Shown: positions 3,001 to 26,400 of the stretch, one piece after another | Position numbering within the stretch: position 1 is the first letter of the stretch | Layout: every line of letters starts with the position of its first letter | Assembly: GCF_052425735.1 (NCBI RefSeq) | Contig: NC_135762.1 | Span: forward strand, 17,794,001 to 17,857,871 | Direction of reading: 5' to 3' | From: Oculina patagonica | Lineage: Eukaryota | Length of the DNA stretch: 63,871 nt | Position numbers and translations under genes: made by a program | The notes under the pieces: generated by a model | The model's input: the letters and a program-made list of their open reading frames with translations, nothing else | What the model was told of the DNA's origin: nothing | Database searches by the model: none

Positions 3001-4690
3001 AGCCTAGAAAAAGTGCCAAAATTTTTTCAACCCAGCGAGAGAAAGCGAAAAACCTCGATGTTAAAAGAAAATAGTATTTGGGAGAAGTATGAGCCTGAAA
3101 TAAATAAAGATTTTTTTGACACATTCTCCCTTATAAAAAAGAAAAGCCAGTTTTAAAAAATGGTTCACAAAAGGAATAACAGTAAAATCTTCTCGGTAGA
3201 CACAAACACCCACGTAAAAGAAAAGTGGAAGATCCTCGCCCCTAAGTTTTACGGAAACGGCGGTAAGTCTCGATAATTAAGATGAAGAAAAAATGTGAAG
3301 TGCACCAAAAAAAATTACAGGCCAAAGGAATAAATCAGGGGCGGATAGGATTTTCAACGGGGGGTGGTGTTTACCAATATTTTTGTTTATATATTGTTTA
3401 AGCCCCAATTTGTTTATGAGGGAGGGGGAGGTTTTAGGAGTTTTTGAAAATGGGAGGAAATATTTTGGGTTGAGGACAATATGGAGGATAGGTCCATCCT
3501 AGTGGGGTTGGGGGATGCCCCCGAGAATATTTGAAAAGTTGAGGTAGACGTGATCCGGAGAGAGATACAGCTGAAAAGTATTAAAACACTGGATAAGTTG
3601 GAAAAATTCTCAATATGAGGAGAAAAAAATAGAGTATAAATGAAAGAAATGACAGCCACGAAAATGAAAGAAAGATATGCGTGTCACCCACGTGGTAGAA
3701 ATTAGCGAAGTGGGGGAATTGGGATGGAATGTGATGCGAAAAAAGGTAAGAAACCGAAAAAAAGAGTAAATGAAGAGAACTAGCAAGGTAAAAATGAAAG
3801 TAAAAGGAACTCAAAATAAACACATGTCAAGAAAATCTCTAGGAAGCCGTTGAAGGGGATATGAGAGGTGGAGGGAATGCCTTTATTTTTATTTTTGGTG
3901 GATCAAGGGGGTGGATAGCCACCCAATCCACCCTGATGCCCTGTACAATAGTATAAAAAAATGATAGAACAAAAGTTAACGCAGAATAAGTAAAATAAAT
4001 GGAGAAGACTGAACCTACCATAGAGGAATAATGGACGCTGCCTACGTGATGAAAGTAAATAGAATACAAACGCCCAAGACGCTGACAAACCTATAGAATA
4101 GAAAAGATCGAAACTGAGCTTCGTCACTCTCCCAGAGAAAATTGAGCGACAAAAACACATTGAAAGAAGAAATGGTAGAAAACGTATGTACTGTAAAGAA
4201 AACTATCAAATGCTACTGTTTGGGGGAGGAGACAATCCAATCTGCACTATCAACTACTGCTCTAGCAAAAGGTAGTAAAAAAAGGAAATGTACCACGAAT
4301 TCACCAAAAGTGAAAAGAAAAAAAAGTGGAAAATAAAAAATGGAATTGGGAACATATAGGTATGTTTATTCGTTCGTCCGTGTTCCTTTCTATTACTTTA
4401 CTTAATCCAGTAGGAAATAGGTACTAATAAGTGAATCACATGCTTTTCCTTATTTTAATAATCAAAGGTACAATGTCTCTTCTATTATGGCATTTTATAT
4501 GCCTTCTTCTTTCTCTTTGCCCTGTAGTGTTATTGTAATTGCTAGTAGTAAGTAGTGTTTTGTAAGTTGTATTAGGTATTGTAAAGACTGTAGTAGTCTA
4601 AGTACTGTAAGTAGTGTTAATCGTGTACTGTAATCGCTTTTCTGTATGTATTGTTGCATTTCAATAAAAAAAAAATAAATAAAAAAAAAC
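1..4690 (+). mobile_element. Degraded L1/Tx1-clade LINE (ORF1 C-terminus, ORF2 EN-RT remnants, 3' UTR, poly(A))
   Basis: Fragments read QMEAFKEARKQG and SQPDKLYIRGK (ORF1 end, 30-115), EIWANEWGYKALFS (endonuclease), NPALLWEMIKLKVREKTISYA (~990), YNEGEKNSKY.LNLEKR (~1245), KTPGTDGLPAE (~1500), KNWRP, and [19 protein letters not shown] (~1750). A GTA-rich 3' UTR is followed by AATAAA and an A-tail at 4662-4689. Many single-base deletions. Confidence 0.85.
3337..3943. mobile_element. MITE-like insertion (CAGGGGCGGAT...CCCTG) inside the degraded LINE
   Basis: Ends caggggcggataggatttt and ccaccctgatgccctg, with G-run subterminal motifs, interrupting LINE ORF2. Low-quality sequence. Confidence 0.5.
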
Positions 4691-4812
4691 AACCCCGTAA
4701 CTCGAACTAACTTCTACTTCCCTTGACCTAGTTTTAGTATTTACTGTAACGAAAACCCCGCTAACTAAACTTTTTTCGTTTCCTTGAGTTCGAGTTACCG
4801 GGAAACACCGTA
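4688..4812 (+). mobile_element. 3' part of a pogo/Tigger-type MITE (same family as 46640-47081)
   Basis: aacaaccccg(c)taactcgaacta...gagttcgagttaccggg aligns by eye with 46943-47081. Confidence 0.7.
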
Positions 4813-4829
4813 CAGACTACTTTGATAGA

Positions 4830-7190
4830 CTCTCAGATTGATCTAGATTGGTGGTCATGCAAATATTGCTATCAGGAGCTACAGATGAGAAACCCTATCG
4901 ACTATAAAAAATTTAATTCTGCATTCAACACAAGACATCTTGGGTATGGAAGAGGATAAAAACCGAAAAATGCGGACAAGAGAAGAAAAAGTAGAAAGCC
5001 CACCAGAAGATAAGAATGGGCGGGTGGGAAGGGAAAGAAAAATCGAACATGAAAAGGAAAAGAAAAAAAGTGTAAGAGAAGGTGAAAAAAAAAAATGATG
5101 CTCAAGGCCGTAGAATTACCATTACTAGAAATCACAATTACAACACAGCTCCTTTTTGGGTATGAAGATTGTGATATAAAAACGACAAAATGCCGGAAAG
5201 AGAAGAAAAAGTAGCTAATAAACTCGCCCACCAACGAACCAAAGAAAGGAAAAAGGTGTGGGGAGAGACACGAAATGACCAACTAACAGGTAATGCGAAA
5301 TCGGAGGCCACTAAATCGGGAAGAAAGAGAAGAATATGCGGATGACCAGTCCCCGAACACGAATCAGCCCCGGGACACCACAACTGAAGGAAATGATGCC
5401 GCCCCTCTACGAAAAGAGTGACGATAAAGGGAAGGATGGGTGACCCCGGCCAAGCAACAGAACGAAGAAAGGCGAAAATGATGAGAAAGAGAGGAAGCCC
5501 AGAGGAAAGAAAAAGGAGGGGGGAGAAGGTGCTGGACTAGGCGATGAAACATAGTTACAGGACACAGCAGACTCCCCTGAATAGGTACCAGGGGTAGCAT
5601 AAACGGCGTCATTACACTGAATAGTCTGTATAACAAAACTAGAAGCCCACCCTCGGCGGTAAAAATATCGCCCCTACACAAATGTTTGGACATAAATGAG
5701 ATGCAGACGGGGTAAAATAGAAACTCGAGCAAACAAGAAAAATGTGAACAGGAAAGATGAGAGAAATGAACTTCCCTGGACCCAAGAACAAAGAAAAATG
5801 AATAATAATTCGGTGGTAATAGGCGGAGCTGTTAGGGGATGTTAGCAGCGGAATACCTTAAAGTTAGGCGAATAAAGAGTCAAAAAGGACAGAACCCTGT
5901 ATAAGGTGTAACAACCTCACCCCACTAATGAAAATAGATGAGGAGTAAGGGAGCGACAAAACTGAAAAAATAAGGACTCGAGAGTCGAGGAACAGGTTGA
6001 AACTAAAGTACAAGCAAAACGAAAAGTCCACTGGACGATGAGTGAGATGAGATGTGTTGGGAGATGGAGGGGTAAGTTGAAGGAGTGTTGAAAGGAAAGA
6101 ATAGAAAGACTCGTCAGAAATAAGGCGTAATCGACTAGTTTGATACTGGATAGACGTAGCGATTGAGATGAACTGAGAGAGAAAATTAGGATAAGGTGCC
6201 AACGGACAACAAATCGGCCACCCTATCCAACTCCGGTAAGTGCACCGGGAGAAACTCATGAGTAGAAGACACCAGCCAAATATGCGTAAAAGCTTTAAGA
6301 AGGGCGTCCCGTGTTTACCAGAATTTAGCATGAACACGGCCAATCGAAAATACAGTGAGGGCAGGCCCAAGCGAGCCCCACAAGCGTACGGCACAAGATC
6401 GTAAACATTAGATGGTGGAAAACGGGAACCGAACAAGAACATCAGGGGAAACTCCTGTGAAAAATCGCTACCACTGCACCCGCCGCAACCCGTGAGACAA
6501 GCGTGTGGCGAAGACCTCGTGGAGAAGACCAACATGACGAAAATGATGGAGACGCAAACTGTGGAAGGAACTCTGCACCACTGAGATCTTGGGCACTCGC
6601 TAGTAACGTTCACGTGATGATGATTTGCTCACGGACCCGGAGAAGATCAAGCAAGCGCAAAGAAAAATTCTGCTTGTCGAACACATTGAAACAAATGAGA
6701 GCCCCAAAAGAGATTGAAGCTCCCGCTTGGTGGTGCTCTGTGTAGCCAAGTGTAAGAAGAAGTGATAGTTCCGCACCCTTTCTGGGGTAACTGATATCGT
6801 CATGCCCACAGTATCAAATTGCACTCTAAGATGTCATCGTCGTAGAAGGCGGGCAGGCCTTCGTGAGATTCGACAAGTCCGAGATAAGTAACAATGACTG
6901 TGAAAACGGAAGGCACGACAGCGTGTCAGGAGTCTCGACCCCCTGAAAATCATCTAAATAATTTAGGACATCGAAACCATGCGTGCACAAAAAAGACACT
7001 GAATTGTATCCGCGGCAGGCCATAGCGCTGACCTGAGTCCCATAGGAAAACAATGTAAAGAAGTATTGATCTCCCACAAAACCCAAAAAGGAAAGTCAAA
7101 GGGTCACACGAAATTGCCGGAAGCTCTCTTAAGTCACGCGTAAATTAGGCAGCCGGTCCTTCGAACCACTAGAGCAGCAATGTGTCCACC
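4830..7190 (-). mobile_element. Degraded DIRS-like tyrosine-recombinase retrotransposon (RT, RNase H, YR; gag missing)
   Basis: Minus-strand fragments: RT motif-A region near 7140, VLNYLDDFQGVE (RT YxDD), FDTVGMTISVTPERV and TKRELQSLLG, ACLTGCGG (RNase H), and HSFRRGAASF (YR catalytic motif, ~5400). Confidence 0.85.
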
Positions 7191-7220
7191 AAGTGTGTTT
7201 TAATGACCCTTATTTTCCAG

Positions 7221-9882
7221 ATATTGATGAATGTGAAACAGAAACACACAACTGCAGCTGGGGCGCGTCCTGTTTCAACAATAAAGGATCTTTTTATTGT
7301 ACTTGTTCTCCGGGATTTTCTGGTGATGGTTTTCGTTGCTCAGGTTAGAAAATGTTCAATGTAATGTCTTAATATTTTCATTTTATCAATTTTATGAATC
7401 TAGCTTTCCATTGGCTTCAAATTGAGAATGAATAGTTAATTACGTTTTAACATAAAAGAGGGATAAAAAAGATCCTAGCAATTACATCGCTTCTGGTCAC
7501 GGGTTTATCTTTCGAATCGAAAAGAATGCGGCACAATGGTGATATTACTGATATTACAATGTCTGATATTACTAAGAATCGCTATAGGTCTATTCAAAAC
7601 AACGACGGAATGAATACCACCCCTGCGATCATTGTTCTTGGGTAAAGATATGGGGAGTGATACTCTGATGAGTGTCCGCTGGTGGCGCGGGAGATTTTTC
7701 CTCGGGCCTTCTGGAAAAGACAACAGCGTATGTGTAAGGTACAGGAGAAAAAAAGGCCCGAAGACAATCTAAACGCTCCGTTGTTCGGTTTACTGCACCG
7801 AACACATATCGGTAAGGGAGGAAGGGAGAGTGGGTCGCGGTACTTCAAATGAAGTCGTAGTGTGTTACTGGCCGACGAAAGACCTAGAAATGTGGTGTGC
7901 CTTCCGGGAAGCAGTTAATACAATACTGCTTCACCAATGGGAGAGACAAAACTATGGAAAACATGCCATTTCTAAGGACTTTTGACTTGCACGCATAATT
8001 AACTACAATGCAATTGACCGGCTTTGAATAGTGTTTTCATTGATTATATTGTTACACGAGCACTGATTGACTGTATAACCAGATCCTTAAGTGTTTGTAT
8101 TGCTTCTTTCTCTGAATTTGATCATAGTATTTCAGTCAATGTACATGTATTATATAATGTTATTTCAGATATCAATGAATGCCTTATCGGCACCCATAAC
8201 TGCCATGATGTCGCTGAATGTACAAACACCAACGGTTCTTTTGATTGCAACTGCACTCATGGCTTCGTTGGAAATGGAACATATTGTGAAGGTAACCGAC
8301 GTTTAAGTCTCCGTGTAAACAAGATAATGACACTGTGTTTGATTAAAACGATAACATCAACAACAACAGCCATAACCATTTGACATTGCTACATTATCAG
8401 CGTAGTATAAGTATTCTAAATGAACGTTAAATGACAACGAATTGCATTATCTGGTTGTTGACACCTTCTAAAGGAAGTAGAAAAAAGGAACATGATTTAT
8501 TTGTAGAAGTTTTAAAGCATTTGAAACAACAATTATCTATCTATTTGAACCGTCCCTTTGAACTACCACCGGTCTTGATTGATTTGGTTTTATGAAGTAA
8601 CTCTCAATGTGTATTTAATCAATTGTAATATACTAGACACTTTATAATTGATAAACAAAAAACGTTCCTTACGGTTAAAACAATTGAAAACTGTTAACTC
8701 TAAAGTGCTGTTGCGCGTATTACCTCCGTTTTGCAAGTTGCGGCAATATGTTGCACAAAGTTGAACTTTACGACTTGCAATGCAACAATGTTGCAATACA
8801 AGTTGAAAGAAAATGTTGCCCGTATTACTAGGTCTTTAGATGATTGTCTGCAGTGGGAAGGTTGAGTTTTTTGTGTTCTATTAGGAAAAATCATTTTTGG
8901 TTGATTTGGTTGAAAGAAAAACTGTTTTATTATTTAAGAACCTTAGGCGCTTTGACTATCAGGGCGCGCATTTCAACAAGTATTTTCTTACTGTTCTTCA
9001 AACAATAACTATTTAATTGCTATCTTGTTAAAGATTTGGACGAGTGCTTAACTGGGACGCACGACTGTAACGGATCGTCTATGTGTAACAACACATATAG
9101 CAGCTTCAATTGCACTTGTCAGCCAGGATACCGCTACAATGGCTCCGACTGCTGGGGTACGACACACTCATACATGCAGTCATGCTTCATACATATAATG
9201 GTTGCATACTGAGAATTTAAAGCTGCGACTGTCTGTTTTCAGACCCTCAGTAGTAACGTTTATTTGGTTTAAGTAGGGTACTGTATGATACAATTTACCA
9301 AGACGTATCTTACCCTCAAATATAGAACATCTGTATGTATTCACGTTAGTTTAGGATCTTGCTTTTATAAGGACTGAGTGTATTTTATAACTGCCAGACC
9401 CCGTGTTTCCAGCTTGGACTATTGGATATTAAAGAACGTTAATACTTCTTTCTGTCCTTTTATCAATGAGTATCAGATATAAGTATAATTTAGTAGGATA
9501 GCCACCCACATGTTCCCAGACATGTTTCCAATATAAAGAGTGTTACATGTAATATGGCGTGCAATATTACACCTAGTGTGTCAGCGTTTAATTCTTATAA
9601 CACTGTTAATAACTGTTTCTTTATTATTTCTTTATTTATTTATTTAGTTATTTAATAACATTTATTTCTTTATTTAATAATAATATCTATTTATTTATTC
9701 ATTTTTTTTACTTATTTATTTACATATTTCAGTACCTATTTTTTTTCATTGTTCAGACATAAACGAATGTGAAGAGGAGACACACAACTGTCACGAGTTG
9801 TACGGTGTTTGTACAAACCTGATGCCTTTCTTTCTCTGTACTTGCACACTGGGCTCCAAAGGAAACGGATCTCATTGCGTTT
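7221..9882 (+). CDS. aGPCR exons encoding four calcium-binding EGF domains
   Basis: Phase 1-1 exons of 123, 123, 123 and 126 bp starting [36 protein letters not shown] and [12 protein letters not shown], each with 6 Cys. Confidence 0.93.
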
Positions 9883-11344
9883 GTAAGTTAACATACCTTT
9901 TGTTTTGGAATAACTTTTCTTAATTTTTGTCTTAAGCCAACAAACTTGAAATGTCATTTCAGCTACTAACCACAGGTGTATTTTTAGCGCTGGATCTGGT
10001 TTACATGATCGACTTAAAGCTCCCATTAAGTAGATGGCGTGAGGAATACCGTATGTCTAACTCGTCACAATTCCAGAACCTTGCCTTGGAGATAGAACAA
10101 GGGGTATTTATTTCATTTTATTATCTAAAGTTATTTGATTTAAAAATAAATATAAATGCAGGCAACACCATAAGTTTTTTCTTCAGTCTGAAAATCAGAA
10201 GACAGCTAGCCATACCACAAGTCAAGGAGTTACATGGCTTTTCTTTAAGGAACGCTCCTCTCGAATGAATTTTATGTATTTGCTTCAGTCCTCTGCCTTT
10301 CCTTCGCAAGAAAAAGCATAAAATTCAGCAATAATGTAGTCGGTTACTCGGTCTTCGTGGTATCTGTTTATTCCATTTTTCTGGCTACAAGCCGGCCGAC
10401 ACATTTTAAAATAAAGGGCTGGTTTTCGAGAAGTTTCACTCAATACAGTGTTTCTACTATCCTCTTCCTTTTCTTACATTACCACCGTCTTCTTTTATTT
10501 TGGCCTTCGCCGCCTTTTACTGAAATGTCAAAACAACTGTTGACCAACGAACTGCATTATACCTCTTTAAGGTGAAGTACGTCTACAGAAACGATCCGAC
10601 GTTATTAAGGACGTACGTTACCTGCCTTCATAACAGGTATGGCTAAATAAATTGATAAATAGATAAATCAATAAATTAACAAATCCATTTTTATCCCAGC
10701 CATCCACAGACAAAGACGCGTGTTAACAGTTTCAGTGCTCTTATAAAGCAATTGCTAATAAAAATGGACCATTATTTTTAGGTTTGGCTGTTCAAAATCT
10801 GTCAAAATCAGTGACAAAGCCCCTTAAAAAAATTCTTGATGCCTTCTCTTGTCCATGGAATTCGTTATTATTTGAAAAGAATTTTTCTATTCTAGAGATG
10901 GAATTGTGTTGACGGAGTTCTGGATGGTGTTTAACTCTGATGGAGTACTACCGATCAGACCTCTTAACTTGGCTGTAAAGAGAGGGAGACTTCGCCACTT
11001 AGCTATAGAGATGGACGGTTATGATGTCATACAAGTAGTTGGTATGTTGAATTTTGGACCAGGGAGAAACTCCGGCAACTTAGAAGGAAGGGTACCAACT
11101 AGAAATTCTTTTTATCCATGCTTAAATAACCTTTTCTCGTTGCAGAGAGAATTGACTGTCCATTAAAGTGTTCTGAGCACGCCTATTGTAAACGAAACGG
11201 TTCTTCCTTTGAATGTGTTTGCACAAGAGGATACATTGGTGACGGAAAAGAATGCATCGGTGAGTCAGTCGTTAGACTAATAGCATAAAAAGAACACGAC
11301 GAAAGATGACTGTTGTAACTAACAGAGAGCAAGATATAACGTAA

Positions 11345-11392
<48 letters not shown>

Positions 11393-11404
11393 TCGAGGTC
11401 AGGA

Positions 11405-11435
<31 letters not shown>

Positions 11436-14400
11436 TCCTGACCGAGAGCCAAATATTTTCCCGTCCGGCCCGACCTAACTCAGTCAATAAGCATTTTATC
11501 ATATGACCACTGAATTTTTTTATTGTTTTTTCTTTCGTGGATGCAGACGCGGCGGCCCATTTCGCGCGCATTTTGAAAAGCCAATGGTAGCTCGTATAAT
11601 TTGTTTGGGAAGCCAGTAAAGTGCATTTGAACTGCGATGTGCGTGCAAAGTTTTAAAACTTCAAAATTGTCAACCAAATCGCCGAGTTAAGCTCCAATCC
11701 AAGGAGATTTAAATCCGACTAAATTCCTCGTACAGGAATGCAGTTAGTAGAAATTTCAAAGGAAACGTTTGTGAAAGACTACAACAAAGAGTTTGCACGA
11801 CGTTTCGGCTAGTCATGCTCGTCTCAGCGAAGACTGAGTTTAACCTGATTGAACAACTTAGCGACGTTTCTTCTGCCGAAATTCACAATTGGTTTGAACG
11901 AGAGGATTAATTAATTTTCCTCCAAGAAGGATTTTGGATGTTAAAAACAACACTAGACCATAATCTATCAACTACATGAAGACTTGGAAAGGGATTGTAC
12001 TAGCAATTCAGGATTTTGCTTCGCTTCGTTTCCCTTCGGCTTCAAATTGGTTTGTTTACCACGGGTCGTAGATTCATGAACGTCTGCTGTTGCTGCTTAA
12101 TCCTTGCATTCGTTAGTTCATCGACGATGTTAAGCTCTGCATTACAGTTGATGTCCAAATTGTGCTTAAAATGCTTCGTGAAAACAAGCGGAAAACTGTG
12201 TCATTGATCAGGTTAGTCGCAAACAGGTACTCGCAATTTGTTTATTGTGATTTAAAATTTCCGCAGCCTGAGAAAAGAGAAATTTATGTTTACTTCGCAT
12301 TTGCATTTTTTCTTCAATGTTTATCATGACTACAAACCAGGATGCGTCTTTGTCCGATTATGTTTTTTTTTTTGAAACGGCTTTTATTTCGATTTTATTG
12401 TTGTTGTCCGGAGTATTTCTTAATCATTTGCCGAGTTTAAACACGTTTTTTTTTTATTTTTTGCGTCTGCAAACTACATTGTTTTCTAGATAGTTAAGAC
12501 GGATTCCGCTGAAAGTTCGAGCAATGAGTGCGAAAATTAAGTACCAAAAATCCACTCATTGCACGGCAACATTTTGTATACTATTTAAAAGATCTCATTA
12601 AAATTCATTTGTCTTAGTGACCCCGCAATTAAATTCTAAAGCATTCTCGAGAAAATTAAAGTCAAACCTCGAATAAAAGTATAAAACGCGCGCCATTTTG
12701 TTTTGAACCGGCGCAAAACGTCCGTTTTAACTGAAATAAAGACAACTTCAAATCCATTTTTTTCTCGCGGGGTCAGCTTGAGTGCTAAATTTTTGGCAGG
12801 TTGTTGTTAGCTGTACTAAAACTGTTGCCATGCTAAGAGGTCTTTTTGGTAACTTTATTTTTGCCTATATTGCTCGAAAATTGTGCGGAAACCATCTTAA
12901 GTTTTAATAAACATGTTGGACATCAGTTTGCTTTTTAGAAAAATCTTAACTATTGCTCATCTGAATTCAAAGCTGTGGAATCAACTGGTTCCGGATTTCG
13001 GCAGTAGCGGGGCCGTACGCTTTTCTAGTAGGGCCGTACGGCTTTTTCCGGCCCTGCTAGAGTGAGGCGTACGGCCCTCATACGGGACTTTTTTTCATAT
13101 GGTTTTCCAAGGAAATTGCGCGCGGGTCCGTACGGGTCATATGATAATATATGTTCTTCTTTATCAATTCCTGTCGTTGCCAGATCTGGATGAGTGCGCT
13201 GTCAACAATGGCGGCTGTCAGCACGTGTGCACCAACAGCCCAGATGGAAGCTATCATTGCTCCTGTAACAGAGGTTTTCTTCTTCACAGCGACAGAAAAC
13301 AATGCCGAGGTAAACTATGAAAAAACACTGTGGATTAATCTAAGTAAGCTGCCATGTAAATTCATGTCTTATTCCATGATTGCAGCATCTGAGGGTGACT
13401 TTGCCTATTGTTCTTCTGAATGGCGTCAAGACATCTTATGGAGTCATACTGTAGCGAGCAGCACAGACATTAAGGATTGTCCTCAGGATCGCCTCAGTGG
13501 TGGTAAGTTTTATCCAGATTATATGGAACAATGTTATCATTACATGACGGTGAGATGCAAACTAAATAATATAAAATAAAAATTAATTTAGGTGCACAGC
13601 GTTTGTGTTGGTTAGGCACAATACAGGTACGTCTACCTGAATTAATAAATAACTTATTTATCACTTGGTTTGTGAATAGATTAAAGCCATTTTAAAGTCA
13701 GTCATTCTTTTACAGGGCGACAAGAGACACGGAAAACATTGTTTTTTATAACAGATTGCATGCATCAATGACTGCTAATTTTTCCTTTTTCCTTTATGCT
13801 CCTGAAAACTAAGATTTGGCAGGGCAAGAAGACTACTTCTGTGAAACTCTAAGAACGGACGTTACCTTTTTTTCGATTGCGTCCTCGGGTAAATGTACTC
13901 ATGATCATATTTTATATGTTGTAATCAGGTGACGCACAGAGGACCTGCTACAGTGGTGTCAGTAAAGGAGTGTGGGGTGTACCTGATCTCACTAGGTGCC
14001 TAACAAAAGCCATGTATGAACTCGAGAAAAAGGCAAGTTACAACGACTTCTTAGACTTCTAATTGACGTCAATGTTAGGCGCGATTAAAAACGTAGCTTA
14101 AATTTGCGCCAAATAAGTGCTTTTGTGATTTTTATTATTTAATTATTATTAACTATCATTATTGTTATTGCGTCATTATTATTATAATTGCTTCGAAAGG
14201 GCTCAAAAGGCCAGACAACGGTCTCCATGCAAGAATAACACAGCGGATCGCCTGTTTAGATCAATAATTCTAGTTTTTAGAGTATTTTAAACTATTACTT
14301 GGTTTCAAAGTTATAACTTGGACGAGGGTTTTGGACTCATGAAACGTCAGCGTTTTACCTAAAAAAATATTCAATTCAAATTCCTTTCTCCTCGTTCTAT

Positions 14401-17400
14401 CTCGACAGCTTGAAAGATTGCTAAACGGAGATGTCAGCTTCTCAGATTTGCTTTACATTGCAAAGGAATTGCGAGATATTCTGGACCCCAAAATTGATAA
14501 GATTTATTCAGGAGATATATTTGCTGCAGTAGATATCATGAATACTTTGAATCAACGGGCCACCGGCACAATGAAGAACATTACTAAAGAAGAGCTAACT
14601 GATTTTCTGGAGGTAAGAATTCTGATTGATTTAATGAATTTTCCCACTTACATTATATGTTATTATATGTGTGTGCACAAAAGGATTTTTAACGATCATC
14701 TTTTCGTCGGCTTATTTTAGTTGTTATATATTTTTTTTTTTTTGTATTTAACTACTGACTGATTATGTTACAGAATATGGGTGGCACAGTAAGTAATCTG
14801 CTCCACACAGAAAATAGACAGGCCTGGAATGGCATGGATAAGGTAGATAAACTATTTTTCGATTTGATTCTATTACTCTAGTTGGCTACAACAACTACCT
14901 AACTCATTTAATACGACATTTATGCGACACTTTTGCTCCTTTTACGTTTTTGATATGTACTTTGCAAGAAAACTACCGGGTAACATAAGTTCCTTGTTTC
15001 TAGATTGCTCTCAAGGCCACAGAGATGATGGCCGCTTTAGAGGATAGTACTGCAACTGCTGCTAGCCAACAGCTTCAAGACATGCTGAATAACGCCATTA
15101 CCGACCCAGACAAGTTTCGCAATCTTAGCATGAGAGTCAAAACTTTCCATGTTGGTAAGAATTGAATCATACAGAACATACTTTGCGGGTGGATGCAAAT
15201 GTATTTTGGCATGTATTGTTAGTGATTCACAAGGTTGTCTTACTCTGTTTGTTTTCATATTGGTCTTATTTTATGTTTTAAGGTAAGACTTTATAAACGT
15301 TTCGCACAGATTCGTACTTTATGAGGTAGTTTTCCCATGAAACTTGGACTTGAGCCACGGCGAGTTGGAGAATGTATTGCATAGCGGAGTTGTCTATTAT
15401 TTTTACCTTTTTCCACCTTCGTTAGTTGAGCAAAGAAGCTGCATAAAAGGATTTGAAAGATACCGTAAAATTTCGGTTAAAAGCCCCCCCCCCCCCGCTT
15501 ATAAGCCCCCCGGTTGTAGGTTCATCTACCTGGAAACAACAAATTACATCCGATTATAAGCTCCCCCGGATATAAGCCCCCCTCTGCTGGATGACAGTAC
15601 TGAACAAGGCTAAATCTTGCGTTATTATGTGTTTTTAACTTAAAAACGTTTTTCAATCAACACTCTCGTGGGGATCTATGTAACTCTTTCCTTTCACGTC
15701 TCAAAACGAAGAAACATGCTAAACGAATATGAAGCTTCCTCGTTATGTCACAAATCACAGAAATCACAAATTTGAAGACTGTTTAATTGATTTGCACTTT
15801 TGATTTTGTATGATTGTACAGAGATATCCATTGACGTGGTTGAGATGATAAAGTTCAAAGGTCTTTCACTTTCGATGATGCGTAACTTGTCCATGGATGG
15901 TGGAAACGGATCAGTTATTTTGAATCAGATCAGTTTTCCGCCTTCCTTATTTGAAGATGCACTTACAGAAAAGTTAGCGTCAGGTGCGTGTTAGCGGCTC
16001 TATATACATGAGAATTGAGAGTGAAAACTGTATGAAACATGTTAGATAAAAGTAATTAAATTGACAATGAATGGTGACAGAGCACATAACTAATGTAATG
16101 TGTCTGTCAGAGAGCACTGAGAGCACTATTCTGATCTTCGCATTCTCTTTTATTAACCAACTCAAACTGAATGCCATATTCAGCCATAATCCTTATTTAA
16201 AAAAAGACTAATTAGAAGGAAAGCAAACGATTTCTTTGAAATCAGGAGATCCTGACGCGGAAAGCCAAGATTTTTAAACGTGCCTAAGGTGTTTTTTAAT
16301 ACCACTCTCAAATTAGAACAAATCTGTTATGAATAGTTTCAACTACAACTATTTCATTTTGTGTTCCAGGATTCTATACCAGTCTTGGCTGTTTTAGTGA
16401 CAATGACCAAGACCGGGCGGTACCTACCATGGAAGGAACACATCAGTTGTTAAAAGGAAGCTTCCTTACTCGCAAGGATGCTGTAGAGAAGTGTGCAGAA
16501 GTGACCAGGAGTCGTGGATGGAAGGTTTTTGCCGTTCAAGATGGCGGCTGGTGCGCGTCGAGTCCCACAGCTCATTTGACGTACAACAAATACGGGACCG
16601 CAGTAAATTGTGTGGATGGGAAAGGAGGCATGTTCGCTAACGATGTTTACATCATCAATGGTAAGATATAACATGGGTTGATGTATGAGTTACCATCAAA
16701 TGATACTTAAACTAAAAGAGATGGGTTTTTTAATATAAATCAAGATAGTATTTTTCTATAGTATTACGCCGTAATTTGGCAGCATGAAAATAAATCATCC
16801 TTCCTACAACAGTACTTTCGGACTATCAGAGCCAAATACAATGGAAAGAAATACAAACAAGGGAATGGACAAGTTTCTTTTTTTGGCGATAAAAATATTC
16901 TTTACATTGTAAAAAACTGTACTGTAAACTGTACAAATTAGTAACAGTCAGAAATAAATAACGCAAATAACTAAACGCAAAAACAGCAATAATTAATAAC
17001 TGCTTTATTTCTTGCATAGCCTACTACACGAGCGTGTGCTCAATATTTTACAAGAACTTGGAGGATTTATTAACTTCGGATCCTCTGTTGGAAATATGGT
17101 GAGTGCGAGGAAAATATATTATGCATCTAACAATAATCCTACCGTAATTATTGACACTCTTTTGCCTTTTTGGTTTGCTGATGTGATTGTTTGGTAACTT
17201 TTGTTTTTTGCTCTGTTTCTGTTTTTGTTGTTGCTGTTGTTGTTTTTTCTGTAACAAATAATGACTTAAGTAGATTAGTTGTTTTTGTAATGACACTGAA
17301 TTTGCTCACGGAGTTAAATAATAATTTCATTCGTGATGGATTTTCAGGTCTTTAGAAGAGATGGGCGCACAGACGCCCTATAACAAATCCAAGCTGAACT

Positions 17401-20400
17401 CCATTATAACTTCGGGCAAAATAGTGTCAGAAGAACAGAGGTTTTACCAGTCCCTCCCAGATCCAATAGAACTAGTATTCGAACACTTGGTAAGAAAATT
17501 AACTGAATAATATACTTTATGACGTAGCTGGTGCGGTGTGTACACCATCCATAAACCGAACATCTCACGATATTTGTATTTTGAGTCGCCCTTCGGGCTC
17601 ACCTAAATACTGCATGACTCGTAAAAATATATACTAGTTATGCAACGCTTTCGAGTGGTATACTATGGAATATCCCACTTGTCACTTGTATTTTCTTGGT
17701 ATACACACTCGCCTAAAGGCTCGTGTGTATACCAAGAAAATACAAGTGACAAGTGGGATATTCCATAGTATACCACGAGAAAGTGTTGTATAACTATTTT
17801 ATACCATGCCATGGAAAATACGCTTACTAAATTTCGTCGAGAATACAATCGCAGCGCACGATGGGAAGGTTGGGTTGAATACCGTCGAATATACAACGGC
17901 TTTCCTGTATTCTGATTGGCTGTATTTTCTATGGCATGGTATAAACAGCGATATGACACACTAAAATTCCTACTAAGATATATATACCACACAAACTACC
18001 CTCATCAGGCCATTTTACTGGTTTAGAACTTAGTCAACTTATGGACTTGTTTAAATCTTCTTAAAGTATCTCAAGCCCTTATGGTCAACGCCTGAAACTG
18101 TTCGATTAAGTCCGTTATTTAAGGTTATCCAGAAAATAGCACATACCAGTCCAAATAAAAGTTTGAGACAAAGATAATCTCATTTGGGATTACGTTTTCT
18201 ACGACAATTCATGCCAGGTAACAAGGGCTGTTAATGTTAACATTTGGACATTTTATGCTTTTTGTATCCAGGATTCTAACGACACTACACCTATTCTGTG
18301 TGCTTTCCTTAACATGGACTCAAAGTAAGTAGAAATTCATGGTCTTTTGAATCGCAGTACCCTAACTGACACTGGATGAATTTGTGTTGCGTAGTCCTAA
18401 ATTCAACTCCTACGCGCTTAATTAACCAACTGGTCAGTCTCCAGTCAGTTGGCATTCTTAAATATTTTATGTTTGTTTCACTTTTGTTTGTATTCACGGC
18501 CCAACAAGCTTCTAGTTTTAAACACAACCGTGTATAAATAAAAGTCCCTTTCTGTTTTTTTTTTCTTTTCAATACTAAGATACTACGAGTTTATCAGAGT
18601 TTTTATTTACACGCTTTTACAAAAGTTCATCTTTTTTTTTCCTCTACAGTGGTCCGAACGATCGATGGTTTGACGATGGATGTTATGTGTACCAAGATAA
18701 CAACACTCATACTGTCTGTCACTGTTCACATCTCACCAACTTTGCTCTTCTTTTTGATTTCCGTGGCTCTCCGGTAAGACGACGTAGGCTATGTTTTTCC
18801 TCGGTTATTGTTTTCGGTTCGGCTATCAGCGGTTACGTTTTTGCGCCTTTGTTTGGTCGATGCAGCTTTCTTTCTTTAGATCAGTCATCATTTTGATCTT
18901 TTTAACCGGCAATTTTGGTCGAAATTTCCTTGTAATATGATACAAAGGGAATAAGCCGCGTAGCACTCTTAACCATAATAATTCATAATTCCCACGAAAT
19001 TCCTCTGCATCAATTTCCAAACAACGCTTATAAAGCTTCCCCAATTGCGGATTGTTGATGTTAAGAACATTTATAAGGTGAATTTATATTGGATACCGCT
19101 TTTGTAGTACTCCGGTCACTCCAACACACCTTCCCTATCTCTGATTCCTCCGTCTGTCCTCGTCCAGGTCGTTCTAAGTCTCCCTACTGCCCTTTTATCT
19201 GTTAGTTGCCATCCTAGCGCCACCATGCAGTCATTGTATCTATCTGCGCGAAGTAGATGGTCTATCCAGTTCCAACGCCGTCTTCTTATTTCATCACTGA
19301 TTCTGTTGACGTGTGTCATTTCTATGACTTTTTCATTGCTTATTCGCGAAAGCTATCTCATCCTTAGAATCCCTCGCAAGCATTTGGACTGAAATGCATC
19401 TAGTTTCTTTTCCTTGCCCGTGGTCATTTTCCACGTTTCGCACTCATATAGGAGTGCTGATCTAACTTGCGTCTTACACAATAAAGCAATAGAGCTTGAC
19501 CTATTTTCTTAAATACACAAATGATTTTAATATTTTGTCACTTATTTTTACATATTTTATCGCATTTCAGCGTTCGTGACTATTTTGCCTATTTTACTAT
19601 TTTAATATATTTATGCTAATTTTATATTTTTATTCGCACTTGAAAATGACCTCGGAGAGGTCGAAACGTCGTGATTTTATATCGCTAAATTTCATAACAA
19701 AATCTATATCCAAGAAACTACTTATCAGGATTTTGTTTTATCAGGACATTATTAAAAAAGATGACGACATGATCTTGTTGATGATGTCATATGTGGGATG
19801 CGTGTTATCAGCCACTTGTTGTTTTCTTGCCATCTTTATCTACAGTATCTTACAGTAAGTAATCCTGGTATTTCAATGTGTCACAGTTATTATTTATTTA
19901 AAATTGAGACAAATTCTTTTCAATTTTTTGCATAATGTATTTATGATGCGTAATCATAGTAAACGACCAAAGTTGAATTTTTGCAGCATTAAGAAATACA
20001 TGGCTGAGTGGCGAGTCTGATCACTGCCGGAACTTGAATTTGAGTCGTTCTGTTTTCTGTAATAAAGTGAGTTCCTCTTGGCGGAGTCAAACGCTCAACT
20101 TTTCAGCCACGCTGATGTAAATAAACAACTGGTCCACTTTTTAATATTTATTTCCTAACAAGCATTTATGTGCTTCTTAAAATAATTTTTTTGATATTTA
20201 CAACGTCTCCAATTAGCATCACCGTTAAAAGTATCGACCCTTAAAAGTTGACTGGTTTGAATTTGTTTTCAGCCTAAAAGGAGACAGTATACACGTGCAC
20301 AAAAATCTGGCATTCAACATAGGTGTTGTTCAACTCATTTTCCTGCTTGGAACGGACCAGACTCACAATAAGGTGAAACGATTCAACGAATAAATAATGA

Positions 20401-23400
20401 AAGACTTTTAAACTGATACTAGATCAGTTATACTTTGAATAATCCCAAGGATCGTGGGGTTTCCCCATCGATCCCTATCAAACAACAAGTAAATGACATC
20501 ATATCCATCATGTAATACCTATTTCACTGTTTTAGTGCAAATCTCTAATTGTATTCGTACGACACAATACGACATATAGAGTACCTGTCGCTCGTAGAAC
20601 TTCATGTATGAGTTCACGTTGCGTCCATCACTCATTTATTAACTCCACAGTGGCTGTGCAAGGCTGTGGGGATTGCACTGCATTTCTTCCTTACCGCCAT
20701 GTTCTCCTGGATGCTAGTGGAAGGATGGCATCTTTATCTGACCATCATCAAAGTGTTCTGCACACAAAAGAAGAGTTTCCTCAAGAGATACTATATTTTA
20801 GGATATGGTGAGCTTCTGTTTTTAAACAAAAATTAGACCTTTCTCTCTCTACATGAATTACTTTAAATGTTTAAAAAAAATTATTGTGGAACAGCCATCT
20901 CATAGAAGTTTCGCTTACATGAGTTCAATAAACCCCTGTTGTACGTATCGGTGCGTGAATGACTCCGCCCTTCCTGTTAAAATCGTATTGAATTTCTCAT
21001 CTCATGGTAGCTACTGGTGGATACGATCTCGATATACCACCCAATTCTCTAAACTAACATATAAAGGCACGGCACTGACAGTTAATATTAGCTAGGATAA
21101 GTTACTAGAGTAATCAAATAACAATAACATTATATACTTTGACTGGTTTATTTAAGGTCTACCTACCGGTGTGACTGCATTATCCATGGCTATTTTCTGG
21201 GACAATTATGGAATAGGGAAAATGTGAGTTATTTAATACATAATACTGTATATCGAGTGTTTTTGTTAACCATCCCTCTGTGTAAAAGCGTTTTGTATCA
21301 AAACAAAGTTAACTCTAGCCTCGCTCCCGCTCAAAAGACCTGGTCGCTTAGTACACAACTGTAAAATTGACCCTCGTTTTCAATTAGACAAGGATAATAT
21401 ATTAGTAAAAAATGTTCGGGTTGTAGCCAGAGATGTTAAAAATTCGAATTAATAAGTTGACACTGGCTAAAAATATTGTTTTTGGACGTTTCGGCCACTA
21501 CTGTTGCCTTCTTCAGCAAGATAAAAATGCAAATGTTCAGCGGCGTCCTGTTAAAATATGTAACGAATGTGTGATTAAAACTAAATGAACTTTCCGAGTG
21601 CAACAAAATTCTCTAGAGCATTCTTAATGAGTCTATGAATTCTTAATGCTATTGTAAACGTTTGGTAGCGCTATGTGTTCGTTTATAGCGTTCCTATCTC
21701 GCACAGAATGCCAAACTTCAAGAATTAGTCGTTGTTTCCACACCGTTGACTTGTCAACAATTTCGACGCTCTCCAAATCTATTTGATGGTCGTTATGCGT
21801 ATGGTGTTTTGCCAACAAAGAGTTTTTATCCAAAGTTGCGATGGCCTTTGCGTGTTCTTTCATACGTGTTTTAAGCGCGCGTGATGTCTGACCAACATGA
21901 ACACAGTCGCAATCGTTACACTTGATCTTATATACAATTCCTCTGGTATCTCGATCCTGCATTTGGTTCTTTCAGTATGTTCGAGATGGTACGTATAGGT
22001 TTATGGGCGACCTTGATGTTGAAGCCACGAAGAACGTTTGCAATTCTTTCGGAAAAACCTTTGGCGTAAGGGAGGATAACAAAACAACGATGGTCGATAT
22101 CATTTGTTTCTTGTTGTCTACTCGGTTGGCGCAGATTTTGAATACAATTTGCAGGGTAGTTATTAGTGGCGAGGGCTTTCGCTACTCGCTTAGTTTCCCG
22201 TGATACTTCCTCCTCGCTGGAAGGAATGTTCCTCGCGCGATCCATGAGAGTGCGAGCGACCGAGTGTTTATGCTGGGGATGGTGGTGTGATTTGAAATCC
22301 AGGTAACGATCGGTGTTGGTAGCTTTCCTGTAGACAGACACGGTGATCGAGCCATCTTCTTATCTGGTTGTTTTGGTGTCAAGAAAGGCAATGGAACCTT
22401 CTGATTCTACCTCGATTGTAAATTTGATGTGAGGGTTGATGGAATTTAGATGTGAGTGGAATTCATCTACGCGTTCCCTTTTTACACATACGTGGCTGTC
22501 ATCTACGTATCTAAACCACCATTTGGAAGGTTAGGGGTCGAAGAGAGAGAGCCTTTTCAGTAGATCCCGACGAGATCCTAGTATCTTTTGACGTCGTGTC
22601 ACTGTTTACTTGCATTCCGACCCACCTAGCAACCGAAGTGGTTAAAGAGAGACTGGATTCTGAGCAGTCACTACCGGAGAGAACCAACTTGTCCATCCAA
22701 AATATCATGGCACTTCTACAGTTCGTCCTCGACAACAATTTCTTTGTATTACAAGGCAACCATTTCCAACAAATTTTCGGTTGTCCGATGGAATCCCCAG
22801 TGAGCGCAATCTTGGCCAATCTCGTCGTGGAACATGTCGAAGAAAAGGCTCCCTCTTCGACCCCTAACCCTCCCAAATGGTGGTTTAGATACGTAGATGA
22901 CAGCCACGTATGTGTAAAAAGAGAACGCGTAGATGAATTCCACTCACATCTAAATTCCATCAACCCTCACATCAAATTTACAATCGAGGTAGAATCAGAA
23001 GGTTCCATTGCCTTTCTTGACACCAAAACAATCAGACAAGAAGATGGCTCGATCACTGTGTCTGTCTACAGGAAAGCTACTAACACCGATCGTTACCTGG
23101 ATTTCAAATCACACCACCATTCCCAACATAAACACTCGGTCGCTCGCACTCTCATGGATCGCGCGAGGAACATTCCTTCCACCGAGGAGGAAGTATCACG
23201 GGAAACTAAGCGAGTAGCGAAAGCCCTCGCCACTAATAACTACCCTGCAAATTTTATTCAAAATCTGCGCCAACCGAGTAGACAACAAGAAACAAATGAT
23301 ATCGACCATCGTTGTTTTGTTATCCTCCCTTACGCCAAAGGTTTTTCCGAAAGAATTGCAAACGTTCTTCGTGGCTTCAACATCAAGGTCGCCCATAAAC

Positions 23401-26400
23401 CTATACGTACTATCTCGAACATACTGAGAAACCATATGCAGGATCGAGAAAGAGGATACCAGAGGAATTGTATATAAGATCAAGTGTAACGATTGCGACT
23501 GTGTTTATGTTGGTCAGACCGGCATCACGCGCGCTTAACTGAAACACGCATGAAAGAACACGCAAAGGCCATCGCAACTTTGGATAAAAACTCTTTGTCG
23601 GCAAAACACCATATCCTTAACGACCATCAAATAGATTTGGAGAGCGTCGAAATTGTTGACAGGTCAACGGTGTGGAAACAACGACTAATTCTTGAAGCTT
23701 GGCATTCTGTGCGAGATAGGAACGCTATAAACGAACACATAGCGCTACCAAACGTTTACAATAGCATTAAGAATTCATAGACTCATTAAGAATGCTCTAG
23801 AGACTTTTGTTGCACTCGGAAAGTTCATTTAGTTTTTATCACACATTCGTTACATATTTTAACAGGACGCCGTTTAACATTTGCATGTGTCAACTTATTA
23901 ATTCGAATTTTTAATATCTTAGTCGTCGAAAAAATAGTTGAAGCCATTTTGAGTCTGCTTCTGTGTTTCTTATAGATGCTGGATGACAGAAATTGTGCTG
24001 GTTTCTCTCTTTCTTCCTCCAGTTGTGGTGGTCATTTTGGTAAGAAAGAAATATCGCTGCATTTAAATGCGTTGACTGTTGAGTTAAATTCTGAGTCTGA
24101 GTCAACCCTAGTTTGGTATAACATTAACTAGCTAACTTTTATATTTATATGAGTAATAGCTTATTAGTTCAACTTCAAATAACAAAGAGTTTTCACTTGT
24201 CATTCTATAGTCTATTTTTTACTGATATGAATTTTGTATCTAATTTGTATCGATTTCTGTTTATTTTTAATTTCAGACAAATGTGGTAATTCTTGGTATG
24301 GTCATTGGTGTACTAATATCTCCCACAACAGAGAGTAGACAGAAACATGCTAACGACAAGACATTTATTAACAATATCAGGTATCTGCATTTGTGCCTGA
24401 AATTACCTATCTTACGAAAGGAACCATTATTGAATCCAAAAATGTTCTCAATAAGACTATTAACCAAATCACGTTATGTGCCGTCTGAACTCACTTTTCT
24501 CGTTTCCTAGAGGATATTGCCAAATGTCACAAACGGCCCTCGCCCTAACCTACCTTGCTTCGGCTGCACTGTTCAACACAAGAAGCTTTTTTGCTTATGC
24601 TCTAAACACTTTAGGGACAAAACAGTCGTGATCGCCAAACAAAACATAAAAAAAAATCGAATTAGTAATTTGCAAGGAGAGAAGCTACACACAAACAGCT
24701 TCATTGTGGTGTTCAAGTACTTGAGGAACATGGAAGTCGAGCCATTGTTATAAAAAAAAACCTTTACCCCATTCGATATGGATGTTTTTGGTTTTTGATC
24801 CTTTTATAGATTTCAGGTTTATCCAGTTTTATAAAAGCAAACCGAGGAACTGATTAAATTTTGCAAGAAATAGCTGAAGCACTAGATTGTTTGTAAAGCT
24901 CAACATTCGCTGCAATAAATTAGCAATAAATCATCGTGGTGTTACAAGTACTTGAGGAACATGGAAGTCAAGCCATTGTCATCATAAAAACCTTTACCCC
25001 TTTGATATAGAGGATTAGGTCCCGTCCTTTTATAGATTTCAGGTTTATCCAATTTTATAAAAGCAAACCAAGGAACTGATTGCATGTGGCAAGAAAAAGC
25101 CACTGCAGCAGATTGTTTGTAAAGCTTTACATTCGCTGCAATAAATTAGCTCATATCATTTTACAGTTAAGGATAATTTTCATATGATCGCTAGCGATCA
25201 CAAGCGATCACTGGACCGGAGATTCTTGATTTATCATTCCCGGGCCAAGCTTCAACAAAGGTTTTTTCTCATAACAGGGTGGCCCTGAAGGCATCTCTGA
25301 TACTCCTACCCCTGCTCGGAGTCACGTGGTTGTTGGGTTTGTTACAAGCAAACACTAACTCGGCAGTAATGTCTTACGCCTTTGTTCTACTCAACTGCTC
25401 ACAGGTGAGTACGATTATATATTTGTTTTGCTAAACCACTTTTATCGTTTACTCGTCTTAAATGTAACACCACCTTCATAAATAAAATATGATGCGATAA
25501 AGACTATACAACTGTGTAAGCATCGGCCTTCTTTCTGCTCTTCAGTTTCCTTGCAAGAGAGTTCAGAATGTAAGTTTAGTTTATTACTGTGGTCGTGAAA
25601 GCAACAAAGAAGATTGACAAATTCCAATATAGCCGTTCCCATAGTATACGTTTCGTTTGAAAATGTGGTCTCCCGTTCACAATAAACAATCGAAATCGGG
25701 CAATTCTTTCGAACGAAGACATGTTAACGTAAGTCATGTATGGTAAAAACACACGGATGTGATCTTGGTGTCACGGAAACTCTTTTTAAAGTAGTTTTCT
25801 ATGTGTCGTCATATTCGAATGCAATCATCAAAACGCTTATTTTTAAACAAGCAAAGCAAAACTTTATGTAGACCAGTTGTAAAATTTAGCGTCAATTCAG
25901 CACTTACCGAGGGTCACCGGGCAAACTGAGGGTTGTTCGCTTGGTTTTTGTTTCGTTTCCTCAGAAACGATACGGTATTATTTTGGATTCGATGTGAACT
26001 ATTTACACAGTGGAGGCTACTATCCAATCAGGACAACGCTCGCAACCACAGAGTAAATAAGTTTGACCGAAGGCAATTAATTTCGTAAAAGCATGTTCTT
26101 CAAATATCGAAAAGTTAATCCTCAGCATGACCAAAAAATATTGAGATTCCTTACAAATACAAATATCCGACGACTGCAATGGTTTTAGGTTTGATTGAAG
26201 CGATGTATTGGGAAAAAATTAGAGTAAGCTCTTTTAGCGTTTAATTGTAAAGTAAACATTCTAGCGATTTTCTGAAACGGAAGAAAATTTCCACCAATCA
26301 AAAGCGTGATGACATGGCATATCCGCCGTGTTTCCTCGCACGGAAGGGCTAGCGTGCCCCGAAAACGGGAAAGTTGATTGAAGAGAAGGGCATATATGCA

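Follow-up and report, generated by a model that had tools for sequence, protein, structure and literature searches.

Can the GAIN domain of an adhesion G protein-coupled receptor (GPCR) itself carry a ligand-binding module? The customary picture of GAIN is that of a closed cap, preceded on its N-terminal side by a string of ligand-binding modules. The question is raised by a single exon at positions 16370-16660 on the forward strand of a 63,871-nucleotide stretch of contig NC_135762.1 (positions 17,794,001 to 17,857,871), which is referred to below as the window. From the letters alone, an earlier reading of this DNA (the original prediction) had taken the exon for a WSC-like domain inserted by exon shuffling between two neighbouring strands of GAIN subdomain B in an adhesion GPCR, open to in-frame skipping and a candidate for an undescribed system.

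Here we report that the exon quite probably encodes a constitutively included WSC-fold module, nested in GAIN subdomain B by one insertion that preceded the split between the window's lineage, probably anthozoan, and scyphozoans, and likely to form a membrane-proximal binding site. In the mechanism that we propose, a WSC-fold module of ~95 residues, placed in a loop of the beta-sandwich half of GAIN (subdomain B), would form a binding site close to the membrane, probably for a glycan or glycoprotein. The GAIN domain itself would thereby become ligand-competent, and binding or load may be passed into the GAIN sandwich.

Results

Borders, frame and splicing of the module exon

The module exon and the two exons that flank it are as follows.

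16370..16660, forward strand: WSC-like module exon, assigned to GAIN subdomain B as a nested element (splice borders, RNA joints, Pfam WSC E = 2e-4, AlphaFold2, Foldseek)
15822..15983, forward strand: GAIN subdomain B exon before the insert, with the predicted first beta strands (RNA joints 15154^15822 and 15983^16370)
17020..17098, forward strand: GAIN subdomain B exon after the insert (RNA joints 16660^17020 and 17098^17348)

The module exon measures 291 nt (97 codons), stands in phase 1 at both ends, and is bordered by a polypyrimidine tract running into ttccag on its 5' side and by gtaag on its 3' side (AG/GT). Read from 16372 it offers 96 stop-free codons, the remaining two frames being stop-rich, and it encodes the text LGCFSD...EKCA...FAVQDGGWC...NC..GKGG..ANDVY. 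A chance open reading frame (ORF) was rejected on the basis of 1612 database proteins that match the exon at E ≤ 1e-3; 708 match at E ≤ 1e-10.

RNA evidence was taken from Logan contigs of seven public RNA runs (X1-X6 and X9) carrying three organism labels. Of the words sampled from 15800-17110, these contigs contain ~36%, a fraction close to the exonic share. Contigs were mapped to the window in two sets (X1, X2, X6, X9 and X1, X3, X4, X5), and joints were read after cut shifts. Both joints that had been proposed as a check, 15983^16370 and 16660^17020, were found in the contigs of the seven runs, with the upstream exon, the WSC exon and the downstream exon all on a single contig and with zero RNA depth in both flanking introns. 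The presence of both joints led us to reject an unspliced pseudo-exon. When joined, exons 14409-19854 read through as one open frame, with a canonical GPS and the first transmembrane segment (TM1) at its end. The borders, the open frame and the RNA joints thus bear out the predicted 97-codon phase 1-1 exon as real and spliced in.

The further suggestion of a regulated cassette, in which in-frame skipping would give receptors with and without the module, now looks decidedly improbable. The 291-nt phase 1-1 exon is symmetric and its skipping would preserve the frame, but this phase is a property of the whole module family and no mark of regulation here. The skipping joint 15983^17020 was seen in none of the contigs of the seven runs even at min_share 1, a source that can miss rare isoforms, while the included form was present on single contigs. 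Because no contig joins 15983 to 17020, inclusion of the WSC exon looks constitutive.

Fold and sequence family of the module

The module reaches 21.9 bits (E = 2e-4) against the Pfam WSC profile (PF01822), below the gathering threshold of 27.8 bits. A PDB profile search with the module alignment found Kremen1 only at E 1.5-3, so a comparison of folds was needed. The AlphaFold2 model of the 96-residue module, made from a 51-member alignment, has a pLDDT (predicted local distance difference test score) of 96.3. Searched against the PDB with Foldseek, it matched at probability 1.00 the WSC domains of Kremen1 (template-modelling score, hereafter TM-score, 0.70-0.72; root mean square deviation 2.3-2.8), Fusarium glyoxal oxidase (TM-score 0.64) and yeast Wsc1 (TM-score 0.57); the next match after WSC domains, the HGF N/PAN domain, had a probability of 0.06. 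AlphaFold database models of family members superpose at TM-scores of 0.9-0.96.

Canonical WSC domains have eight conserved cysteines. At ~50% identity, the 51 aligned members of the present family have six invariant positions, four cysteines and two glycines, in the order G, C, C, C, C, G, and a canonical eight-cysteine WSC domain was rejected on this count and on the sub-threshold Pfam score. Compared with the WSC domains of Kremen1 (5FWS-5FWV), Wsc1 (7PZ2) and Fusarium glyoxal oxidase (9N3U), the module therefore presents a mixed picture: the fold is the same (TM-score 0.57-0.72), whereas the four invariant cysteines, the score below the Pfam WSC threshold and the ~20% identity to Kremen1 set it apart. 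Of the predicted WSC domain, the fold holds and the canonical class does not; as modelled, the module has a WSC fold, and its sequences form a distinct, uncurated four-cysteine branch of WSC.

The 1612 and 708 matches given above come from an exhaustive search of 1.84 billion representative proteins. Tandem arrays of the module reach 38 copies in an amphioxus protein of 5602 aa (P0001), and in other members from amphioxus, Styela and Ptychodera its neighbours are C-type lectin, F5/8-C, SUEL, ricin-B, tectonin, laminin-G, Mucin2_WxxW and CUB domains. These relatives resemble the window module in identity (~50%), in the invariant positions and in the phase 1-1 exon; they differ from it in being secreted or lectin-type arrays, and none of those scanned with Pfam has the module within another domain or in a GPCR. 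The amphioxus lectin gene that encodes P0066 likewise carries the module as one phase 1-1 exon, which fits a mobile, shuffled module exon and lends support to the predicted origin by exon shuffling. The family, with ~1600 representative proteins, is without a curated Pfam model.

Position of the module inside the GAIN domain

Among the best 150 module matches the sole long receptor is a Rhopilema esculentum protein of 2477 aa (XP_065058300.1, here P0062). Pfam finds in it many EGF domains, CUB, SEA, a weak GAIN match and 7tm_2, and its module lies at residues 1940-2034, between the GAIN match and the seven-transmembrane (7TM) region. A Sanderia malayensis protein (P0171) has the same layout. 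The window protein is colinear with both, and the module site is identical in all three; exon 15822-15983 in particular is colinear with the pre-insert segment of the two jellyfish proteins, and this exon and its splice sites are kept in a relative's contig in the European Nucleotide Archive (ENA; locus L001).

We identified the host domain as GAIN on the Sanderia homologue, to which the window protein is colinear; on the window's own exons, which are too short, the Pfam GAIN score was not reached. On the Sanderia piece, one and the same Pfam GAIN match (49.7 bits against a cutoff of 26.5) extends over residues 30-324, pairs them with positions 3-181 of the 210 in the profile and crosses the module at ~207-303; the pre-insert part alone reaches no further than profile position 99. 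With the same protein as query, phmmer found the crystal structure of BAI2 HormR-GAIN in the PDB (8oek_A, E 1.1e-4), and the alignment falls into two stretches, one of them covering subdomain A (34-125 against 111-196). The other (304-411 against 304-408) runs from directly after the module to the GPS, beginning with FFVGISTISFKSLGALL aligned to YFVIGAVLYRTLGLIL. BAI2 has ~78 residues of subdomain B before that point, and here a comparable ~55-65 residues with predicted strands precede the insert. Because the BAI2 alignment restarts after the module, with ~78 residues of subdomain B before the restart, the insert is placed by alignment about one third into subdomain B. It is preceded by the strand with ...FP.SLF... 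(...FPPSLF... in the window) and followed by that with ...Y.NL..LL. The Pfam match that spans the insert and the BAI2 alignment that resumes after it thus support two parts of the original prediction, that the flanks form one GAIN domain and that the module sits between two neighbouring subdomain B strands. Throughout, we follow the framework of Arac et al. 2012 (PMC3321182), in which the GPS and the rest of GAIN are one fold, the GPS supplying its last five strands.

For a structural view, residues 1735-2165 of the Rhopilema protein, comprising GAIN and WSC, were modelled with AlphaFold2 from an alignment with two full-length rows; the short exons of the window had been misplaced as separate alignment rows and were excluded. 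The model gives a pLDDT of 92-96 for WSC, 70-80 for subdomain A and <50 for subdomain B. Foldseek retrieved GAIN structures (8oek, 8vy2, 8vti, 4dlo) together with WSC structures for this model.

Conservation and origin of the insertion

The L001 contig aligns to the window in exons only, at 73-85% nucleotide identity. All the GAIN-region exons compared are of equal length in the two, and AG/GT borders are kept in all but 18272-18324. Amino-acid identity and the ratio of nonsynonymous to synonymous substitution rates (dN/dS) between the window and L001 are distributed as follows.

16370-16660, WSC exon: 90% amino-acid identity, dN/dS 0.03 (dS saturated)
17020-17098, next exon: 96% amino-acid identity, dN/dS 0.03
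Most other GAIN exons: 59-79% amino-acid identity, dN/dS 0.13-0.61

Orthologous module exons in other assemblies show 82-92% protein identity, and between the window and the jellyfish proteins the module is 55-56% identical against 20-37% for the rest of GAIN. Such comparisons identify the module as the most constrained part of the predicted stalk, the short exon 17020-17098 being as constrained.

The insertion site is the same in Rhopilema, in Sanderia and at a third jellyfish-type locus (L002), where the exons are colinear and the module exon measures exactly 291 nt, with its acceptor and donor at the same codon positions and in the same phases. A maximum-likelihood tree computed for 53 modules unites the five GAIN-nested ones in one clade (97/82), which splits into window plus L001 on one side and the three jellyfish types on the other. 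Given one clade and an identical site, length and phase, a single ancestral insertion is the simplest reading. Sequence evidence thus strongly supports one insertion of a mobile phase 1-1 exon before the window lineage, probably anthozoan, separated from scyphozoan jellyfish, and strongly supports that the arrangement has since been kept under strong purifying selection.

It could still be argued that the flanks are not one GAIN domain, with the module standing between domains, or that the jellyfish and window insertions arose independently. Subdomain B has no confident model (pLDDT <50), the short exons of the window give no Pfam GAIN match, and, with ~50% identity throughout the module family, orthology does not follow from similarity alone. 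Set against this, one Pfam GAIN match spans the insert in the Sanderia protein, whose BAI2 alignment resumes after the insert and continues to the GPS; the helical half and the insert are separated by ~55 residues for which strands are predicted; and the third jellyfish-type locus shares site, 291-nt length and phases within the single clade of nested modules. We regard either version as highly improbable, and retain a single insertion into one GAIN domain.

The cleavage motif CHCSHL/TNFALLF, in which the slash marks the predicted scissile bond, is present in the window and in L001 and absent in the Rhopilema and Sanderia proteins, both of which have a degenerate GPS. Since the HL/T triad is absent and the CxC cysteines are lost, these jellyfish homologues are probably uncleaved receptors. 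In a word-indexed search, the GAIN region of the Rhopilema protein retrieved Rhopilema isoforms and Sanderia only, and a shorter query had no match; some proteins known to bear the module escaped the index, and the spread of the architecture can hardly be judged from these negatives. In the source, the Rhopilema isoforms go under 'fibrillin-1-like' or 'uncharacterized protein' despite their GAIN-7tm_2 ending.

The host receptor gene

The remaining parts of the receptor gene are listed below; boundaries in the N-terminal adhesion part are approximate.

7202..14032, forward strand: N-terminal adhesion part (tblastn colinearity with the Rhopilema protein, Pfam, RNA depth on 13950-14032)
~7202-7342, 8159-8290, 9033-9152 and 9744-9878, forward strand: calcium-binding EGF exons (tblastn colinearity with the Rhopilema protein)
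~9951-10136, forward strand: SEA-like region (weak Pfam SEA match)
13183-13305, forward strand: EGF exon (Pfam FXa_inhibition/EGF_CA)
13373-13501, continuing to the exon that ends at 14032, forward strand: HormR-like cysteine motif (colinearity with the Rhopilema protein)
14409-14612, 14774-14842 and 15004-15154, forward strand: GAIN subdomain A (helical), three exons (RNA joints, junction contexts, open frame)
17348-17489 and 18272-18324, forward strand: further GAIN subdomain B exons (RNA joints; colinear with the jellyfish homologues; conserved in L001)
18650..18773, forward strand: GPS exon, CxC...HL/T followed by the Stachel TNFALLFDF (Pfam GPS, PDB matches)
19745..25401, forward strand: 7TM exons, with TM1 at 19745-19854, TM3 at 20666-20809, TM6-7 at 25279-25401 and others between (RNA joint 18773^19745, Pfam, tblastn with the 7TM region of the Rhopilema protein)

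The upstream part of the window receptor is colinear with the C-terminal 1000 residues of the Rhopilema protein, and the Sanderia counterpart of 14409..15154 matches Pfam GAIN and subdomain A of BAI2/BAI3. The GPS exon reads CHCSHL/TNFALLFDF, with the scissile bond predicted between the L codon at 18732-18734 and the T codon at 18735-18737. Pfam scores GPS on 18651-18773 at 50.2 bits (cutoff 22.5), and in the PDB the exon matches ADGRG6, ADGRL3 and ADGRD1 at E 3e-6 to 1e-5. The window receptor is predicted to be cleavable at a canonical HL/T motif. For Pfam 7tm_2 (cutoff 20.6), 42.1 bits were obtained on exon 20666-20809 and 27.1 bits on 25279-25401. Two defining traits of adhesion GPCRs (class B2), a secretin-like 7tm_2 and a GPS directly before TM1, were both found in the gene. 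On the basis of the GPS, the 7tm_2 exons and the upstream EGF, SEA and HormR-like parts, we take its product to be an adhesion GPCR, arranged as EGF x4, SEA, EGF, HormR-like, GAIN and 7TM.

Several features within and around the gene were recorded alongside. Intron 14033-14408 is of the GC-AG type (donor AG/GCAAGT), and the RNA joint 14032^14409 occurs in four runs. Two mirrored Penelope-like ORF sets, with inverted near-identical ORFs at 21633-22341 and 22596-23780 (~21431-23919), lie inside an intron of the 7TM region. The intronic repeats 15542-15740 and 17532-18128, the latter including an inverted pair of short ORFs, show summed RNA-contig depth of up to ~80,000 and many loose ends; they probably represent abundant repeats that are transcribed from other places in the genome. 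Positions 1-6000 of the window have an AT skew of 0.29-0.36, with a GC skew of 0.33 at 2-4 kb; Tandem Repeats Finder reported almost nothing there and no EGF homology was found, and the receptor gene seems to begin downstream of this segment. An apparently intact retrotransposon of the type lacking long terminal repeats (non-LTR) occupies 29506-34396 on the reverse strand, with an ORF2 of 1242 aa containing endonuclease and reverse transcriptase and an upstream ORF1 of 286 aa. Relatives at 45-68% identity number in the hundreds across ENA and Logan assemblies, and the sole named ones come from the stony coral Oculina patagonica (56% identity).

Discussion

Several known systems offer partial parallels to the receptor described here. 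Canonical adhesion GPCR GAIN domains, as in ADGRL1/3 and ADGRB2/3 (4DLQ, 4DLO, 8OEK, 8VTI), share with it subdomains A and B, the GPS with CxC...HL/T, the hydrophobic Stachel and 7tm_2; their known adhesion modules are N-terminal only, whereas the window receptor is predicted to have a complete WSC-fold domain within subdomain B. EGF-TM7 receptors (ADGRE/ADGRL4) and the SEA-containing ADGRF/G receptors likewise have EGF-CA repeats and SEA upstream of GAIN-7TM, and the Rhopilema protein gives an ADGRF3_N-like Pfam match; no nested domain is known in these receptors. Polycystin-1 (PKD1) has a WSC domain far N-terminal of GAIN, and its membrane part comprises 11 transmembrane segments with PLAT. 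In contrast, the membrane part of the window receptor is 7tm_2, and the Rhopilema homologue has no PKD, REJ or PLAT domain according to Pfam. A PKD1-like protein was rejected, the Pfam scan of the Rhopilema protein yielding EGF, CUB, SEA, GAIN and 7tm_2 only and the window having 7tm_2 exons.

GAIN loops are often longer than 50 residues, according to a survey of GAIN domains (PMC11697300), the main text of which mentions no folded domain inside GAIN loops and lacks the insertion-related terms looked for. The same survey describes an extra beta-sandwich in PKD1 GAIN domains, which is unlike the WSC insert considered here. In the full-text literature, of which most subscription journals lie outside the coverage, the combination of WSC and adhesion GPCR appeared only in a polycystin-1 review, and no domain inserted into GAIN was found. 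A GAIN-nested WSC-type domain in an adhesion GPCR is thus provisionally undescribed, in agreement with what had been supposed from the sequence.

With regard to function, a membrane-proximal binding site for a glycan or glycoprotein is the most likely role that we infer for the module, because it is the most conserved part of the stalk and its family is otherwise found among lectin domains. Certain points weigh against our interpretation. Glycan binding is read from the fold and the neighbouring domains alone, and the WSC domain of Kremen1 is part of a protein-binding ectodomain. Subdomain B is modelled at pLDDT <50 on both sides of WSC in the Rhopilema protein, so which two strands flank the insert, and how it lies with respect to the Stachel, is read from sequence alignments, mostly of homologues. 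Saturation of dS against L001 makes the dN/dS values rough; the clade of nested modules may partly reflect taxonomy, all five being cnidarian and most others deuterostome; and contigs drop rare variants, so a minor skipped isoform is compatible with the RNA data.

The original prediction had looked to the Stachel for the purpose of the insert, with the nested module acting as a lever on the tethered agonist: a ligand or pull would loosen the GAIN sandwich, and the Stachel would be released or exposed. In favour of this, the GPS is intact in the window receptor and the Stachel (TNFALLFDF) is of the typical kind; module and Stachel share one beta-sandwich; and constraint on the exon directly after the insert equals that on the module (dN/dS 0.03). 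In Rhopilema and Sanderia, however, the module (55-56% identical) is retained at this site although HL/T and the GPS cysteines are missing, and therefore the conserved function would need no cleavage-dependent Stachel release; moreover, subdomain B, which holds the Stachel, is modelled at pLDDT <50 only. We consider such a lever unlikely. Since the jellyfish copies retain the module without the cleavage triad, its conserved role, as far as these sequences tell, must be independent of GPS cleavage.

A structural or cis role is doubtful, if still to be reckoned with. The module could stabilise a divergent GAIN, dock on the receptor's own glycans or 7TM loops, or cluster receptors, as reported for the head group of yeast Wsc1. 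Its fold is related to the domain of the Wsc1 mechanosensor, it is kept in jellyfish receptors with an otherwise degenerate GAIN, and it is strongly conserved together with the adjacent strand. On the other hand, its relatives place the module among classical lectin domains in secreted multi-lectin proteins, which suits binding in trans better.

A more far-reaching possibility, distinctly unlikely in our estimate, is that GAIN acts here as a sensor of ligand or force, with glycan or extracellular-matrix binding deforming subdomain B and so controlling exposure of the agonist or, in the uncleaved jellyfish forms, the contact between GAIN and the 7TM region. If true, nature would here provide a case of an adhesion GPCR gated allosterically and directly through GAIN, a mechanism retained since early in cnidarian evolution. 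The route by which forces and ligands pass from the extracellular region to the tethered agonist is the central question for adhesion GPCRs. With a predicted cleavable form in the window and probably non-cleavable forms in jellyfish, this receptor family may offer a system for establishing whether perturbation of a GAIN loop can signal, with or without cleavage.

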